Positions 38,083 through 44,678 of a stretch of DNA of 64,000 nt are shown here, piece after piece; position 1 is the first letter of the stretch, and every line of letters starts with the position of its first letter. Source of the stretch: Diplonema japonicum. Lineage: Eukaryota > Protista > Euglenozoa: Diplonemea. A model generated the notes under the pieces. The model had not been told where the DNA came from. It saw nothing but the letters and a program-made list of their open reading frames with translations, and ran no database searches. The position numbers and the translations under genes are program-made. The stretch lies in the NCBI GenBank assembly GCA_964019335.1, contig OZ025699.1, positions 372,001 to 436,000 of the forward strand, read 5' to 3'.

Positions 38083-39720
38083 TTATCCCTTTGGAAAAAG
38101 GGGTAAGGTAAGTCTAGCGGGGGGCATGGCTTCTTTCACTAGTGTCAAAAGCACCGTCTTGTGATCCCTCACCTCATCAGGAGCATCAGCCTTTAACAAG
38201 CGGAGCGCCTGTTGCCCGTCACCCAACAAATAATACCTCCCTGCCTCATTGTAGGCTTCCCACACATTGCTTCCAAGCTCGTACATCCACTCACCAGCTT
38301 CGGTCTTCCCGCCCTGTGCGGAAAGGACCTCATAAGCAACAGTATCGTCAAGAGATAAAAGGATAACGCGTATATCGAAAGCATAGGACACTTCTTTGTA
38401 GATGGATGTGCTGCAGACGATGTTGAACTTCTCATGCCCGCAGAGTCGTTCCAGTTGCGAGGCTTGAACGGCGACCTTTCCGATGACGGCGATCGACATC
38501 AGCTCGGCACACCCGAACGACCCGCAGTGCGCTGACCCTGTTGCGATGCCTGTTGATATTTCCACCGATTCGGCTTTGGTAAGAGGTTGCAAGAGCAACG
38601 CAGCTTCTACCGCTGATTTGGCGTGCGTTGTACACTTCCTGGAACTGTTGAACGCGGTGTGGATGTGGTCCCCAACGACCCCGCTGACCACCCCGTTGTG
38701 CATCGTTACGGCTTTCAACACCGCAGAGACAAACCGTGTAAATCGTTCAGCGTACGCCCCCGGGTTCTCTTCTATACCGTCGTGAGTCCCGCAGAGGTTG
38801 AACACCGAACACGACACCTTCCGCTTCTCAACAAGCATTATCAAATTGCTTTCCGCCAGATCCGATACACTGGCTTTGAATTCGTCCTCCATCGCCTCAG
38901 AACCGGAGTCCACATCGAAATTGGTCATTTGAAGGCACGACTGCGGGAGGTACGGGCGGTAAATATGCAGATTGTTGAGAATGCCGGATAGCGCGTCGAA
39001 TAGCTGCGGGGGCAAACCCGATTCCCCGATGGCTTGCTCGGCGGACTCGAGGTCGAAGCGGGACAGGCAGCTTGCAATGTGCTCGGCGGCGGCGATCACA
39101 GACTTCATCGTCTCTCGCTCTGCGTGGAGATCGCGTGCAAAGCTTCTCGTGAAGTAAAAATCAAGAAGAAAGATAAGCAGCGTCGCCAAAAGCTCTGTAA
39201 GCTGCAGTTTGATGGATTTCTTGCAAGGCAGAGTGGCACACTGATATACTTCCCTTCGCTGACCTTGCGTGGAAAACTGGATAAAATTCGACTCCACGTC
39301 ATATAAGCCAAACCTGGTAGTGTCCTCAATCGTAACAATAACCAGCCACGCCATCAGTGTTGAGACAAGACATTTCGTGACACGACCCGGGAGCCTGAAG
39401 ACTAAGGCCACATCGGTTAGTACTACAAAGAAGGACCACATTCTCATTGAGGGCTCGGCAATGTTCTTCCAGTCCGCCAGCAGCAGCGAGACACCACTTC
39501 CGTAAAGCATCAACTCAACTAGCTTGTCGTTTACGCTTTTCGTCACGAAGAGATGCCCGAAGAAAATAGTGTGTGTTATAAGAAGGAACGTGTAGTGGTA
39601 GCTCGCCTCAGTGAACATCGCGACAATGCAAGTGAGCGGGGCCGGCAGCATCAGCAGCAGCACCTTCTTCCTGGAGATCTCCAAGCTGCTGTCCCCGGGC
39701 TTCGTCACGAATCGTAACAT
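38083..39720 (-). CDS. Multi-TM receptor with only a degenerate cyclase-like domain
   Basis: Same TM region, DFYFTR and NNLHIYRPYLP linker as the cyclases. Lacks FTDI, EVKT and NxAAR. C-terminal EWMYEL. Confidence 0.8.
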   Translation of the reverse strand: MLRFVTKPGDSSLEISRKKVLLLMLPAPLTCIVAMFTEASYHYTFLLITHTIFFGHLFVTKSVNDKLVELMLYGSGVSLLLADWKNIAEPSMRMWSFFVVLTDVALVFRLPGRVTKCLVSTLMAWLVIVTIEDTTRFGLYDVESNFIQFSTQGQRREVYQCATLPCKKSIKLQLTELLATLLIFLLDFYFTRSFARDLHAERETMKSVIAAAEHIASCLSRFDLESAEQAIGESGLPPQLFDALSGILNNLHIYRPYLPQSCLQMTNFDVDSGSEAMEDEFKASVSDLAESNLIMLVEKRKVSCSVFNLCGTHDGIEENPGAYAERFTRFVSAVLKAVTMHNGVVSGVVGDHIHTAFNSSRKCTTHAKSAVEAALLLQPLTKAESVEISTGIATGSAHCGSFGCAELMSIAVIGKVAVQASQLERLCGHEKFNIVCSTSIYKEVSYAFDIRVILLSLDDTVAYEVLSAQGGKTEAGEWMYELGSNVWEAYNEAGRYYLLGDGQQALRLLKADAPDEVRDHKTVLLTLVKEAMPPARLTLPLFPKG

Positions 39721-40022
39721 GAGTACCCCCCCTATATCCCGCCTTTTTTTCCCACAGAAAGAAGAAAAAGAAATAAGGAAATTAGAAAAAAAACAATATG
39801 CAATCTGGGATTAAAAACTGCATGCCACACCCACTACTCTTCCCCCCCCCCCCCTTGCTCTTACAAGAAACTGAGCGGTACTTGTTAAAATAAAAATAAA
39901 AGAAGGAAAAAAAAAAAGAAAAAGTAGGACACCTTCGAATATTTCCTGAGTGCCCCCATAACGTATGTAGTTAAAAAGAAAAACACACCCCTCCCTTTTT
40001 TTTTTTTTGTTCCCCTTCGTTT

Positions 40023-41069
40023 CTACAGCTTAGCAGCAGTCCCGTTCGAGAGCTTAGTGGCAACGACAACCTTAGTCAGCCCGTGGATGAGATCGAAGGC
40101 GGCATCGACCGTTTCAAAACCCGCCTCCTTGACAACACGCGAAACATTGCTGGGACACAATCCAAGCCCCTCGGTATTAACAGCAACATGCTGAAGCGCC
40201 CACAACGCTGCCGACTTAGGGCCCTGTAAGTCATCGTCCACCATGAAGTCATGCACAACAAGCCGACCGTTCGGCTTCAAAACACGATACGCCTGCTGGT
40301 ACATTGGAAGGAGCATGTCACAGGGGACGGAACCAGATAGGTACGACATAAGCACCAAGTCATGCGAAGATTCAGGAAGCCCCCACGCCGTGAGAGCTGT
40401 TCCTGATTCGTATGTCACGCGGGCCGCCACACTTGCCCCGTACTGAGAGACGATCTCGGCGCCTGTCTCCGCGACCTTAGGAAGCTCTAGAATAGTGGAC
40501 CTGAGGTTTTTGTACCTCATGGCCATTGCGATGCTGAACGCGCCTGAGCCGCCGCCAATGTCCGCAACACAACCAACATCACAGTTAACCTTCTTGAGAA
40601 GCTGCCGTGCAGTCGCCATAGACCCGTTGTGCTGTGCCAATGTGTACTGCCTGGCCTCTTTGGCATTGTTAAACCATGTCTCGTAGGTAGGCCCTGTTCC
40701 TGTAGACACTGTTTTACCGAGGTCTGCCATGTGGGTGTAGAACTGACGGCCGACCTGGAGGCGGAGATAGTCCCCGTAGAAATGCTTGCTGGACCTTACT
40801 AGGAAGGATGTGGTTGATGAGTGGAGGGTGTATCTACCGTTGTTGTCCCTGTGGATTAGCTTGGTGCTGGTCAGTGCTGTGAGGAGTGTCTGCAGCCTCG
40901 GGGCGTCGATTTTCAACGCCTTTTGAATATCCTTCACAGTGGGCTTTTCCTTGCTGTTGTGGATCGCATCGAACAGGCCGAGCTCTAATGCTGCAAAGAG
41001 TGCCTGCGAGGCCATGAAACCATAAGCAATATCCTCGATGCTGATTGGCACTTCATTGCTTGACGACAT
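40023..41069 (-). CDS. DSYB: DSYB-like MTHB S-methyltransferase (DMSP biosynthesis) with C-terminal PTS1 AKL
   Basis: IAYGFMASQALF, RLQTLLTAL, FYGDYLRLQVGRQFY, YTLAQHNGS, DIGGGSGAFS, VLMSYLSGSVP, HDFMV, ALWALQHVAVN..GLGLCP are recalled as characteristic of DsyB/DSYB. Confidence 0.8.
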   Translation of the reverse strand: MSSSNEVPISIEDIAYGFMASQALFAALELGLFDAIHNSKEKPTVKDIQKALKIDAPRLQTLLTALTSTKLIHRDNNGRYTLHSSTTSFLVRSSKHFYGDYLRLQVGRQFYTHMADLGKTVSTGTGPTYETWFNNAKEARQYTLAQHNGSMATARQLLKKVNCDVGCVADIGGGSGAFSIAMAMRYKNLRSTILELPKVAETGAEIVSQYGASVAARVTYESGTALTAWGLPESSHDLVLMSYLSGSVPCDMLLPMYQQAYRVLKPNGRLVVHDFMVDDDLQGPKSAALWALQHVAVNTEGLGLCPSNVSRVVKEAGFETVDAAFDLIHGLTKVVVATKLSNGTAAKL

Positions 41070-41177
41070 TATTATTTTTCCTTTCCCGCCCCCCCTTTTT
41101 TTTTTCTTTTTTGAGGAAACGCTGACAAATATATAAAAAGAAAAAAGAAAACTACAAAGTGCAGGACAAAGAAAAAT

Positions 41178-41800
41178 ATATATGAGTTAAAGGAAGTCTT
41201 TGTGAGACGCCCCCTTGTTCTCATCTTCTACCTGCACCTATCCCCTTTCAGCAGCGGTTTCTCCTCCTTTGGTGGTCTTGCCGGCCTTCTCCCCAGCCTG
41301 GCCGCTCTTTCTCTTCGTTCTCTCGCCCATTGTCCTTTCAACGCCTCTAGGTCTTGCTTGGTCTTCGGTGATGCAAATATCGCCCTCCTGTTCCATCCGA
41401 TCACCGCCTTTGTCCTCCCGATGGATCGTAGTGTGTGCACCCTTGTGCTCGGCTCAGCTGGGAAGGCCCTCCTTCCTTTCACCTTCTTCAGTACCCTCCC
41501 TAGCTCCCATGTGTGCCAGATCTTCTTCATCAGTCCATGCAATCTCCTCGCTTTCTGCTGTACTTCTGCGAGATCCCCCAGCTTCCCTCCAAGGGTCTTC
41601 CCGGTCACGTTCTCGAAATCCAGTGCCAGCTCCACCGTCGACACTGACGTGTTCCTGCTGCCTGCATACCAGCGCAGTTGCCGCATCCACCTCAGCACCT
41701 CCTTCGTGTACTCCCGTAGGACATCCCCTGCCGGTAGCTTGCCGAAGTCCTTGTCCGACGGTACTGGGTGTTCTTGACCTTGTGTGTTCTCCTGCCATAT
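41178..41800 (-). mobile_element. LINE-like 3' fragment
   Basis: WMRQLRWY..ELALDFEN..GWNRRAIFAS..KGDRCR* is homologous to the 26374 ORF. Confidence 0.8.
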
Positions 41801-42467
41801 ATTATGTGTAAGAAGTAAATGGGACCTCGGTTTGTAAATATGAAATGTCTTTTTCTTGCACGGAACAGGCAGAAGTAAAAAAAGAAGAAGAAGTGTCGTA
41901 CTTTTGTTTGTGCACAGCCGGGGGGGGTTAACCTGTAGAAGGATAAGCCCAACAATGCTACCGCTACTCTTTTTAGCCCTGCACACCCTTCGGACGACGT
42001 GTTCCTTCAGTTTTCTAAGCAACTGAAACTCACGGTGTGGGATGGACCAAAGAGAAACACCAAAGGGACTGTTAAGATGTAGTAGGACGTCGAAAGGCTT
42101 GCGTCGTTGTTCGGTCGCGGGTGGCCGGAACCTTTAACATGGTGCGTCTCCAGACAGACAGTGGTAGGTGAGGAAGACTTCGCTGGCGGTCACGATACTC
42201 AATCAGTGCGACGCATCCTTCCATGCCCGGAAGGAAGGCGGGTCATCTGCGGTAGTGTAATGACTTGACGTGCAAACAAACGCTATCTAACCAGAGGAGC
42301 TCCGTCGGATAATAGGGATGCTGCATTGTGTGGTTTTCATGATTGACATCTCAGCCATCCACCCCTAGGGGGTATTCGAAACTGCTAGGATGCCAGTGAA
42401 ATACTGATGCCCAGTGAAAAAAATACTTCACGGCATAGAAATGCCGAAGGAACGTAACCTTTTGGTT

Positions 42468-44552
42468 TCACTCTGACAGACCAAAAACATTTGTCATCGT
42501 AAAATCCGCCTTGCACACAGAATAGATACCCCACTCGTCCATTGTTCTTACTTTGGTGCATTGTACATCCTGCACACCCTTGCACTCCTCTGCAGTGGTC
42601 CCGTAAAGACAGAAGGCCCCCTCCGCCCTCGCAGCCGAGCACAGATCCGAGCACACCTCGACACACTCACCCAATACTGTCACAAACTTCTGCCGTGCCC
42701 CTCCGACCGTCCCGTACCTGACTTCGCTCGTCGCCAGCCCGATGTGGAGGTCATGTTCCTTGTCGCTGTTCTTCATTGCACCCCACAGCATCCCAACAAA
42801 GGCAAGGGAGTTCTCCACATGTGTTGTGCAGGAACGTGATGTGTTCCACCCAACAGCGACCCTGCTCCCCTGCAGAGACACGATCACCCCGTGCGACCTC
42901 CCCGTGCACATCGCGATCCGGGAAAGCATCTCGTTCACGAAGAGTGTCCCTTCCATAACCTGCTGCATTGCCACCTTGATGTTGACGATGCCCATCGTTG
43001 CTGACACGGAGTGCTGGAGCCTTGTGTTCTGAATAGGGCTGTTGCACATGTTCTCGCCGGCCACGCTGCTGTGTGCCGAAGCACTCCTGTCCTCCCTTTT
43101 CAGGCCCACCTGCGACTCGACAAACCTCCTCCTCCCCTCTAGAGCTTTTGGCAGAAGCAGATTTGATGTCACTGGTTCCGCCATCCCCTTCAGGACCGTC
43201 TCCCCCATCGGAAGAACACAGACAGATTCCCAATCAAATCCTACCTCCCCCAACACCTCAGGAGTCACAGCCACAGCTCCCCCGACACACACCCCTTCCA
43301 TCCGAGCCGCCTTGTTCACTGTCCCCCCGAAGTAGTCGTACCTCCCAGTCAGTGTGTTCAACTGAACATCAACATCACCACAGTGTACCCCAACACGGAC
43401 ACGAAGCCCACACCACGGACCATCGCTGTCCAAAGCAAGGTGTTCCAAAGCCAGCAGTGCAGAAGGCCACACAGCAGAGACAAGCCCCTCTTGAACAGAG
43501 AGCCCAAAGGAAACAGCATCAGAAGAGCTCTCAAAGGCGACCATGAAGGCATCACCAATGGTCTTCACCTCGTAACCGTTGTGCTCGGAAATACAACCCC
43601 GCATCACTGTGTTGTGCACACGAAGACCCTCCTTCATCCCCTCAGGGCACGCCTCCCATGTTGCCGTCGAGCCTTGGATGTCGGTGAAGACGATGGCGGC
43701 ATGGCCTGACTCCCTTCCAGGTGCGGGGACATCTTCCTTGACACCTCCTGGTTGGTCAACGAAGAGGGCATCAGGGAGGTAAGGGCGGTAGATGTGGAGG
43801 TTGTTGAGGATGTCGGTGAAGGCGGCATGGAGGGGAGGGGGGAGAGGAGAGGTACAGATGATGGACTCTGCCTCAGTAAGATCGAAGTGGGAGAGGGCGG
43901 AGGCGATCCGCTCTGTGGCGCTGATGACGGAGTGCATCTTCATGTGCTCATTGTGAAGGTCGTGGGAGAAGCCACGGGTGAAGTAGAAGTCCAAATAAAA
44001 GATGAGAAACTGAACGGTGAGGAGAGCAAAGGCGTCGAGGAAACTTCTAGAACAGGGGAGCTCTTTACAATCATAAAACTCACGACGCTCTGCTTGGGAA
44101 GGGAGGTAGGACAAGTCGAAGAGGCCGAAGCGAAAGATTGACTCAGACATGATCAGCAGAAGGTACAAAGTCAACAGAGCAAGTATAAGCACGACGAATC
44201 GCCTCCGCAATCTAAGGACAAGACAGAGATCAAGGAAGATGACGAACACGGGCCACTTCATCTGCTGACCGGTTGCTATGTTTTCTACATCTCCTATGAG
44301 AAACACAACGCATAGGAAGAAGATACAGCCCTCTGTGAAGGAGGCTCGTATCTTCTTCTCGACAGCCACCTGAATAACCATTGCAAACGAAACCAGAACG
44401 ATCCCTGCCCATTGCGCGGATCTGAACCAATGTATAGAATAACTAAAGTCGAGAACTGTGACTATCCCACCTAGGCTTCCACCGATAAAGATGATCTTCT
44501 TCCCGAAGGCAGCGGACCTGCTATCGTTGCCGAGCACCAGCCAATCAAGCAT
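42468..44552 (-). CDS. Receptor-type adenylate cyclase, copy 4
   Basis: Catalytic motifs intact. Start placed at MLDWLV; the ORF extends to 44642. Part of a 2.2-kb tandem unit with copy 5. Confidence 0.9.
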   Translation of the reverse strand: MLDWLVLGNDSRSAAFGKKIIFIGGSLGGIVTVLDFSYSIHWFRSAQWAGIVLVSFAMVIQVAVEKKIRASFTEGCIFFLCVVFLIGDVENIATGQQMKWPVFVIFLDLCLVLRLRRRFVVLILALLTLYLLLIMSESIFRFGLFDLSYLPSQAERREFYDCKELPCSRSFLDAFALLTVQFLIFYLDFYFTRGFSHDLHNEHMKMHSVISATERIASALSHFDLTEAESIICTSPLPPPLHAAFTDILNNLHIYRPYLPDALFVDQPGGVKEDVPAPGRESGHAAIVFTDIQGSTATWEACPEGMKEGLRVHNTVMRGCISEHNGYEVKTIGDAFMVAFESSSDAVSFGLSVQEGLVSAVWPSALLALEHLALDSDGPWCGLRVRVGVHCGDVDVQLNTLTGRYDYFGGTVNKAARMEGVCVGGAVAVTPEVLGEVGFDWESVCVLPMGETVLKGMAEPVTSNLLLPKALEGRRRFVESQVGLKREDRSASAHSSVAGENMCNSPIQNTRLQHSVSATMGIVNIKVAMQQVMEGTLFVNEMLSRIAMCTGRSHGVIVSLQGSRVAVGWNTSRSCTTHVENSLAFVGMLWGAMKNSDKEHDLHIGLATSEVRYGTVGGARQKFVTVLGECVEVCSDLCSAARAEGAFCLYGTTAEECKGVQDVQCTKVRTMDEWGIYSVCKADFTMTNVFGLSE

Positions 44553-44678
44553 CTTTCCGATTACCTGTAGGGTGGGGTAGGGGGTATTCGAAACTGCTAG
44601 GATACCAGTGAAATACTGATGCCCAGTTAAAAAATACTTCACGGCATAGAAATGCCGAAGGAACGTAACCTTTTGGTT

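Follow-up and report, generated by a model that had tools for sequence, protein, structure and literature searches.

Does a heterotrophic protist that lacks plastids carry a gene for the synthesis of dimethylsulfoniopropionate (DMSP), and in which compartment would the product of such a gene work? The question is raised by an open reading frame (ORF) at positions 40023-41069 of a 64,000-nucleotide stretch of the Diplonema japonicum genome (contig OZ025699.1 of assembly GCA_964019335.1, positions 372,001 to 436,000; the whole stretch is referred to below as the window). DMSP, a major marine osmolyte, a nutrient and the precursor of climate-active dimethyl sulfide, is usually seen as a product of phytoplankton and some bacteria. 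In the dark ocean, diplonemids are one of the most abundant groups of heterotrophic eukaryotes. DSYB converts 4-methylthio-2-hydroxybutyrate (MTHB) to 4-dimethylsulfonio-2-hydroxybutyrate (DMSHB) with S-adenosylmethionine (SAM). In the methionine-transamination route to DMSP, this is the committed step. A preliminary description of the locus had noted an intronless ORF of 348 amino acids ending in NGTAAKL and had taken its product for a DSYB with a peroxisomal targeting signal. The ORF was recovered as described and lies on the minus strand, which had not been specified. Its translation, aligned with itself, matches at 100% with zero internal stops, and the motifs quoted in the description (IAYGFMASQALF, YGDYLRLQVGRQFY, YTLAQHNGS, MSYLSGSVP and ALWALQHVAVNTEGLGLCP) are all found in it.

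We compared the predicted protein with known structures and with the wider family. A phmmer search of the Protein Data Bank retrieved the DsyB/DSYB entries 7wdw and 7wdq as the best matches (E 1e-57, residues 10-337), the next being human ASMT (7e-18); with NCBIfam, nothing was above the cut-offs. Over residues 10-337 the window protein is colinear with DsyB without interruption. When 1.84 billion representatives, clustered at 50% identity, were searched exhaustively with phmmer, 61 proteins reached E<=1e-30, and below them came a long series of generic O-methyltransferase-like (OMT-like) proteins at about 1e-22. An AlphaFold2 model built from a 36-sequence alignment (predicted local distance difference test score, pLDDT, 94.1; predicted template modelling score 0.89) has DsyB 7wdq_A as its best structural match, with template modelling scores of 0.89/0.92 and a root-mean-square deviation of 1.7 A. 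In a quick tree of 117 rows, the window protein is placed in the eukaryotic DSYB clade (support 99), which is nested in the DsyB/DSYB clade (98), separate from the OMT-like rows. In a careful 48-row tree with OMT-like rows as the root, the DsyB/DSYB family has 100/98 support, and the window protein branches inside eukaryotic DSYB (100/99). The trees were anchored on the Prymnesium parvum genome protein P0106 and on clusters that carry the annotation MTHB S-methyltransferase; the sequences actually assayed and the negative control from Streptomyces varsoviensis are not among their rows. By homology and predicted fold, the assignment of the window protein to the DsyB/DSYB-type MTHB S-methyltransferases and not to generic O-methyltransferases, first proposed from its motifs, is supported.

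The MTHB-binding residues of Nisaea denitrificans DsyB, defined by mutagenesis, are Tyr97, Gln101, Tyr129, Tyr142, Gln146 and His291, and its SAM-binding residues are Ser150, Gly173, Asp196, Asp223, Ala224 and Ser239 (PMC10989797). Residues of the window protein were mapped onto DsyB with HMMER and MAFFT alignments. All six MTHB-binding residues are kept (Y101, Q105, Y129, Y142, Q146 and H294); Y101 and Q105 lie just upstream of the methyltransferase domain, at the end of the N-domain, and the other four are within the methyltransferase domain. The Tyr142, Gln146 and His291 positions are diagnostic, since 61 outgroup proteins mostly carry F, M and M there. The SAM site, which lies in the same domain, reads S150, G172, E195, T224, A225 and S242, with four of the six positions (S150, G172, A225 and S242) identical to DsyB. 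The replacement of Asp196 by Glu is shared with 30 of 31 eukaryotic DSYBs. We consider it very probable that the window DSYB is active as an MTHB S-methyltransferase.

Among named proteins, those closest to it are two from Diplonema papillatum, P0001 (57% identity) and P0034 (53%), followed by a partial D. ambulator protein (60%) and one from Sulcionema specki (47%). The preliminary description had called the host a probable diplonemid, which agrees with these closest proteins and with three further features of the genome. A spliced-leader copy, apparently of the euglenozoan type, is present at 1368-1406 on the minus strand (...ACCAACGATTCTAAAGCTACAGTTTCTGTACTTTATTG, then GG instead of GT); from 27.5 to 55.7 kb every long ORF is on the same strand; and glycolytic enzymes carry a type 1 peroxisomal targeting signal (PTS1) at their C-termini. 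The last feature is seen in one paralogue each of TIM (-MSKL) and PGK (-ASKL) and extends to acyl-CoA oxidase (ACOX, -GSKL), with untagged paralogues where present, and the genome has two Pex14_N loci. Such tagged TIM, PGK and acyl-CoA oxidase together with Pex14 are the glycosome signature of diplonemids and kinetoplastids. The host is a plastid-lacking diplonemid with glycosomes as its peroxisomes.

Where did the gene come from? In the careful tree, foraminiferal sequences branch first, then fusions of an alpha/beta-hydrolase with DSYB, and then a clade supported at 98/82, within which the diplonemids are a basal unresolved grade and haptophytes and dinoflagellates form a crown (92/92). Acquisition from algal prey had been suggested in the preliminary description, and a recent capture from a haptophyte or dinoflagellate, which would concern the origin of the gene only, would suit its identity of about 48-52% to algal DSYB and the phagotrophic habit of diplonemids. 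The nesting of the eukaryotic DSYB clade within bacterial DsyB-like sequences likewise means that transfers occurred in the family. Such a capture is nevertheless improbable and the suggestion found no support: the diplonemids lie outside the algal crown, the gene is present in four diplonemid species of two genera as well as in the window genome, the second DSYB paralogue of this genome (see below) has short introns of the host type, and constraining the five diplonemid sequences as monophyletic is not rejected (delta lnL 0.66, p-AU 0.47). Since diplonemid monophyly costs only 0.66 log-likelihood units, one ancestral diplonemid gene with later duplications would fit the data. As to the fusions, P0124, P0128, P0368 and P0369 (one of them from MMETSP) form a well-supported clade of proteins of 620-725 amino acids, with an N-terminal alpha/beta-hydrolase domain fused to the DSYB domain. 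They were considered as a pointer to a pathway partner and dropped, the fused domain being a generic, uninformative alpha/beta-hydrolase.

The frame of the window DSYB stays open for 39 codons 5′ of the ATG (an open frame of 387 amino acids), and since this stretch contains no ATG, GTG or TTG, the protein has no possible start further upstream; the predicted protein has 14 residues ahead of its conserved core. One independent DNA run yielded contigs identical to the window, which cover the gene evenly at about 14-fold, a single-copy depth. Two other DNA runs yielded related-strain copies that are 95-97% alike. Relative to the related strains there are 15 synonymous and 7 non-synonymous codon differences, which indicates that the window DSYB evolves under purifying selection. 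This bears on the idea of a decaying retrocopy or a contaminant contig that holds no working host gene. A retrocopy could be imagined from the absence of introns, compared with four in the paralogue, and from the low-complexity direct repeats on both sides of the coding sequence (CDS), yet the ORF is intact, the excess of synonymous differences is as given above, and the catalytic residues are all kept. Contamination is contradicted by the position of the gene in a same-strand array of euglenozoan genes and by the identical contigs at single-copy depth in the independent run. We find this idea, in either form, hardly credible.

Retroposition may still be how the gene arose, without making the window DSYB a pseudogene. 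The two repeat copies are 87% identical (repeat search, family D4), each with an A-run followed by a G-run in the orientation of the gene, and their position around an intronless CDS is compatible with an old retroposition, though as a weak hint. The ORFs adjoining the window DSYB are likewise intronless, and no spliced-leader remnant was found upstream of it. A run of 13 A is present shortly 3′ of the stop codon, and low-complexity tracts are common in the intergenic DNA of this genome. A candidate spliced-leader junction at 41074, where contigs from two runs share an end followed by 40 extra letters, was rejected as an artefact: the low-complexity segment 41075-41116 had been skipped in the comparison.

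We next consider the C-terminus. The preliminary description had called AKL a canonical PTS1, and this was borne out: in addition to fitting the strict pattern [SAC][KRH][LM], -AKL meets the diplonemid PTS1 rule, and AKL is listed as a PTS1 in the glycosome table of D. papillatum (PMC8611851). Among the 90 ORFs of at least 100 amino acids in the window, only the window DSYB ends in a strict PTS1; the frequency predicted from composition is 0.32%, and the observation is well beyond chance. From the G of the GxTK motif to the C-terminus there are 19 residues, compared with 10-13 in 177 of 187 homologues. In the model, the last strand runs to residue 338 and is followed by coil (residues 339-348), with a mean pLDDT of 58 for residues 341-348; the last 12 residues, ATKLSNGTAAKL, are without D or E. 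The -AKL tripeptide is thereby predicted to be exposed on a flexible tail. At the other end of the protein, the 14 residues before the core include 0 K+R and 3 D+E, no match to a type 2 peroxisomal targeting signal (PTS2) was found in the N-terminus, and the window DSYB appears to be free of a competing N-terminal targeting signal. Because there is no N-terminal signal and -AKL lies on a flexible nine-residue tail, import into the glycosome via PEX5 and PTS1 would be the most likely route, and we judge a glycosomal location of the protein to be probable.

A strict PTS1 is rare in the rest of the family. It was found in 3 of about 190 other members with intact C-termini, namely in D. ambulator (-SSKL, likewise on an extension) and in the foraminifera Nonionella stella (-QSKL) and Bolivina argentea (-IAKL). 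Complete DSYBs with a strict PTS1 have 13-14 residues before the core, compared with a family median of 47, and no homologue with a long N-terminal presequence has a strict PTS1. Within diplonemids, the signal occurs in two different DSYB paralogue lineages, those of the window genome and of D. ambulator. The comparisons support the view that the PTS1 tail is a derived, lineage-specific addition. The start of the S. specki DSYB (P0125), MSRRLDVIASHI, has an RLx5HI motif, near the canonical PTS2, and is similar to the PTS2 listed for D. papillatum hexose kinase (PMC8611851).

Several homologues deserve separate mention. The foraminiferal DSYB-like proteins P0143 (N. stella) and P0130 (B. argentea) lack an N-terminal extension; as the transcriptomes were made from field material, contamination is possible. 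Their foraminiferal clade-mate P0173 has a presequence of 48 residues and no PTS1. The environmental cluster P0356, with 12 marine metatranscriptome members, combines a short N-terminus with the ending -KPAGKL, which fits the loose PTS1 rule only. A PTS2 on the N-termini of A-type DSYBs (the type of copy A of D. papillatum) was rejected as a candidate: only a permissive regular expression fits them, and it also matches 23 of 103 algal presequences (22%).

The genome assembly (62.5 Mb in 132 contigs) contains two DSYB genes, of which only the window copy has a PTS1. The second paralogue, on contig C1, has introns of about 34, 45, 35 and 33 nucleotides (read by eye), a basic N-terminal extension (MFSKIIRNGVRAAPRQVRQCSGRK...) and the ending ...ATKA, with no PTS1. 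Its exons were compared piecewise, not as a joined spliced protein. For the last exon, identity is highest to D. ambulator (87%), followed by D. papillatum A (76%) and the window copy (71%), and identities between the window DSYB and the C1 exon pieces range from 50 to 71%. On this evidence, C1 is orthologous to the A-type genes of D. ambulator and D. papillatum, and the window gene is a paralogue that has diverged further and lacks introns. The C1 copy is probably sent elsewhere, to the mitochondrion or possibly by a PTS2.

Axenic D. papillatum contains the osmolytes DMSP (m/z 135.047, confirmed by MS/MS), gonyol and dimethylseleniopropionate (DMSeP), with no biosynthetic gene given for its DMSP (PMC8611851, 2021). 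Putting the above together, we lean, with confidence somewhat better than even, to the reading that the window gene encodes a working DSYB, one of two paralogues, that is imported into the glycosome through its -AKL. We infer that this paralogue would methylate MTHB with SAM to give DMSHB, that it would enter the glycosome, the diplonemid peroxisome, by the PEX5/PTS1 route, and that the end products would be DMSP and then DMSP-derived gonyol.

A number of observations weigh against this reading. As for the enzyme, the residue corresponding to Asp223 of the SAM site is Thr; this site is D in 18, S in 8, T in 3 and N in 2 eukaryotic DSYBs (S, T or N in 13 of 31), and we know of no S, T or N variant at this site that has been assayed. 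As for the tail, no orthologue of the window paralogue was found, including in searches with the D. ambulator and D. papillatum B queries, and conservation of -AKL is thus not demonstrable. Both annotated D. papillatum DSYBs, like the C1 copy, lack a PTS1, and the listed strain contigs start 18 nucleotides inside the 3′ end, so that the -AKL tripeptide lies outside the strain comparison. As for cofactor supply, no PTS1 isoform was found in the genome at the four loci of SAM synthetase or the four loci of S-adenosylhomocysteine (SAH) hydrolase, which leaves SAM entry into the glycosome and SAH exit from it unexplained. To our knowledge, no eukaryotic enzyme has been assigned to the other three steps of the DMSP pathway, and a wholly glycosomal pathway is hypothetical. 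The four SAH hydrolase loci have identical termini, and two of the four loci with a SAM synthetase C-domain lie on contig C111 in short open frames.

The identity of the residue at the Asp223 position also bears on substrate choice. After the duplication, the window copy could have shifted to a seleno-analogue or another thioether hydroxy-acid, leading to gonyol or DMSeP, with C1 as the true MTHB methyltransferase. It is indeed the more divergent paralogue (57% identity to D. papillatum A, 50-71% to the C1 exon pieces), and DMSeP and gonyol do occur in D. papillatum beside DMSP. However, the six MTHB-contacting residues are all identical to those of DsyB, S or T at the Asp223 position is also found in other diplonemid DSYBs and in many environmental ones, and a branch length of 0.7 is ordinary for the clade. 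A change of substrate is therefore, in our opinion, quite improbable. In bacterial DsyB-like proteins the same position is N in 11 and D in 7.

An active DSYB might also reside in the cytosol, the site of SAM synthesis, and carry -AKL as a neutral extension without function. The untagged SAM synthetase and SAH hydrolase, the untagged D. papillatum copies and the lack of an orthologue that shows conservation of -AKL would all be expected in this case, and cytosolic DSYBs probably do exist, given the many environmental ones that combine a short N-terminus with the absence of a PTS1. Against this, a strict PTS1 is expected in about 0.3% of proteins and here sits on a rare flexible extension of nine residues; it recurs in D. 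ambulator and in two foraminifera, never together with a long presequence; and the gene is under purifying selection. We regard a cytosolic enzyme with a functionless tail as unlikely, and retain import into the glycosome as the preferred reading.

Compared with algal DSYBs (P. parvum, Fragilariopsis cylindrus and Symbiodinium), the window DSYB belongs to the same clade (100/99), with 47-52% identity, the same two domains, all MTHB residues and Glu at the Asp196 position. Algal DSYB is reported to be chloroplastic and mitochondrial (PMC12614181, citing Curson 2018), and the algal proteins carry N-terminal extensions of 40-70 residues, whereas the window DSYB has none and bears a PTS1 on an extra tail; it also branches outside the algal crown, in a plastid-free heterotrophic host. 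With bacterial DsyB (N. denitrificans 7wdq/7wdw and Labrenzia aggregata) it shares the fold, 37% identity, the complete MTHB site and four of the six SAM-site residues, and it differs in Asp196Glu, Asp223Thr, the C-terminal PTS1 extension and the eukaryotic genomic context. P0001 and P0034 of D. papillatum, its closest named relatives, share its residues, with Thr or Ser at the Asp223 position; unlike the window protein they have no PTS1, and P0001 has a basic N-terminal extension of 38 residues. Both are publicly named '3-hydroxy-5-methyl-1-naphthoate 3-O-methyltransferase', which appears to be a misannotation of DSYB that hides them from DMSP gene surveys.

DSYB has been described in the heterotrophs MAST (Incisomonas), Picozoa and choanoflagellates and newly in Oomycota (PMC12614181, 2025). 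Like the 'Eukaryote Clade II' DSYBs of that work, the window DSYB has a plastid-free marine heterotroph as its host and conserved key residues; unlike them, the diplonemid sequences adjoin the algal clade and have peroxisomal signals, the Clade II proteins being reported as sister to the bacterial clade and that of Incisomonas as having a mitochondrial transit peptide. Clade II was compared by its published description and our tree was built without its sequences, so a link to the foraminiferal clade is not established. The arrangement of the tail is like that of PTS1 enzymes of Glycomonada such as TIM and PGK, with [SA]KL on a short C-terminal extension and one tagged copy per pair of paralogues, although those enzymes belong to glycolysis or beta-oxidation and the window protein is a methyltransferase of sulfonium synthesis. 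It is conceivable, and we put this forward tentatively, with rather more doubt than confidence, that relocation of the committed DMSP step into peroxisomes is a recurrent solution of plastid-free marine heterotrophs, reached in diplonemids (with PTS1, maybe with PTS2 in Sulcionema) and in two genera of foraminifera (with PTS1). Diplonemids would then make DMSP and gonyol partly in glycosomes, with a second isoform elsewhere.

A full-text search of openly searchable papers (subscription-only papers, including Curson 2018, lie outside it) retrieved no paper on DSYB in diplonemids, Diplonema or Euglenozoa. Nor did it retrieve DSYB in a relevant peroxisome context, foraminiferal DSYB genes, or any methyltransferase of osmolyte or sulfonium synthesis located in glycosomes or peroxisomes. 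Both DSYB and gonyol go unmentioned in the genome paper of D. papillatum. The proposal that a heterotroph may make DMSP does not stand as a novelty, DMSP in D. papillatum having been reported in 2021 and DSYB in other heterotrophs in 2025. What is new is the link to a diplonemid DSYB gene and the predicted glycosomal compartment, both unreported in the searched literature. If the window gene is a bona fide DSYB, it would provide a genetic basis for the DMSP and gonyol measured in D. papillatum. A diplonemid DSYB would serve as a marker of DMSP potential in meta-omic data, and the naphthoate O-methyltransferase name in databases would be corrected. The location predicted here, in glycosomes or peroxisomes, recurs independently in foraminifera; it would, if true, be a new compartment for the DMSP pathway and raises the questions of how SAM is transported into peroxisomes and why this step should be compartmentalised. 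D. papillatum is transformable, so a localisation test is feasible.

The coordinates of the gene, its domains and the accompanying features are collected in Table 1.

Table 1. Features of the DSYB locus in the window and of the second DSYB gene of the genome.
Feature	Position	Strand	Remarks
ORF	40023-41069	minus	ATG start, 348 aa, end ...KLSNGTAAKL* (program ORF listing and sequence read)
DSYB paralogue, CDS	40026..41069	minus	Intronless, N-terminal targeting extension absent; stop codon 40023-40025
O-methyltransferase dimerisation domain, N-terminal (residues 6-90)	40800..41054	minus	PF08100, E 3.7e-17; helical N-domain in model
Class I SAM-dependent methyltransferase domain (residues 124-319)	40113..40700	minus	PF00891, E 8.3e-16
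C-terminal extension LSNGTAAKL, 9 residues	40026..40052	minus	Past the usual family end (GxTK + 6-9 residues); predicted flexible coil
PTS1 tripeptide -AKL, final three codons	40026..40034	minus	Fits [SAC][KRH][LM]$
23-nt low-complexity direct repeat, downstream copy	39989..40011		Begins 12 nt past the stop codon
23-nt low-complexity direct repeat, upstream copy	41089..41111		Ends 20 nt ahead of the ATG
Second DSYB paralogue	contig C1 27688-28760 (L002:1498-2718)	minus	Four short GT-AG introns read by eye

The gene is flanked by two ORFs on the minus strand, 38083-39720 and 42468-44642, which look by eye like paralogues of each other that encode membrane proteins with several passes and with motifs of class III adenylate/guanylate cyclases (such as FTDIQGST and KTIGDAFM); some of these motifs seem to be missing from the downstream one. 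Just 5′ of the gene, the segment 41100-41800 is a very high-copy dispersed repeat, which overlaps the ORF 41228-42022 (minus strand). In a DNA run of the same organism, its summed contig depth per bin lies between about 1,900 and 42,000, compared with about 14 over the gene.

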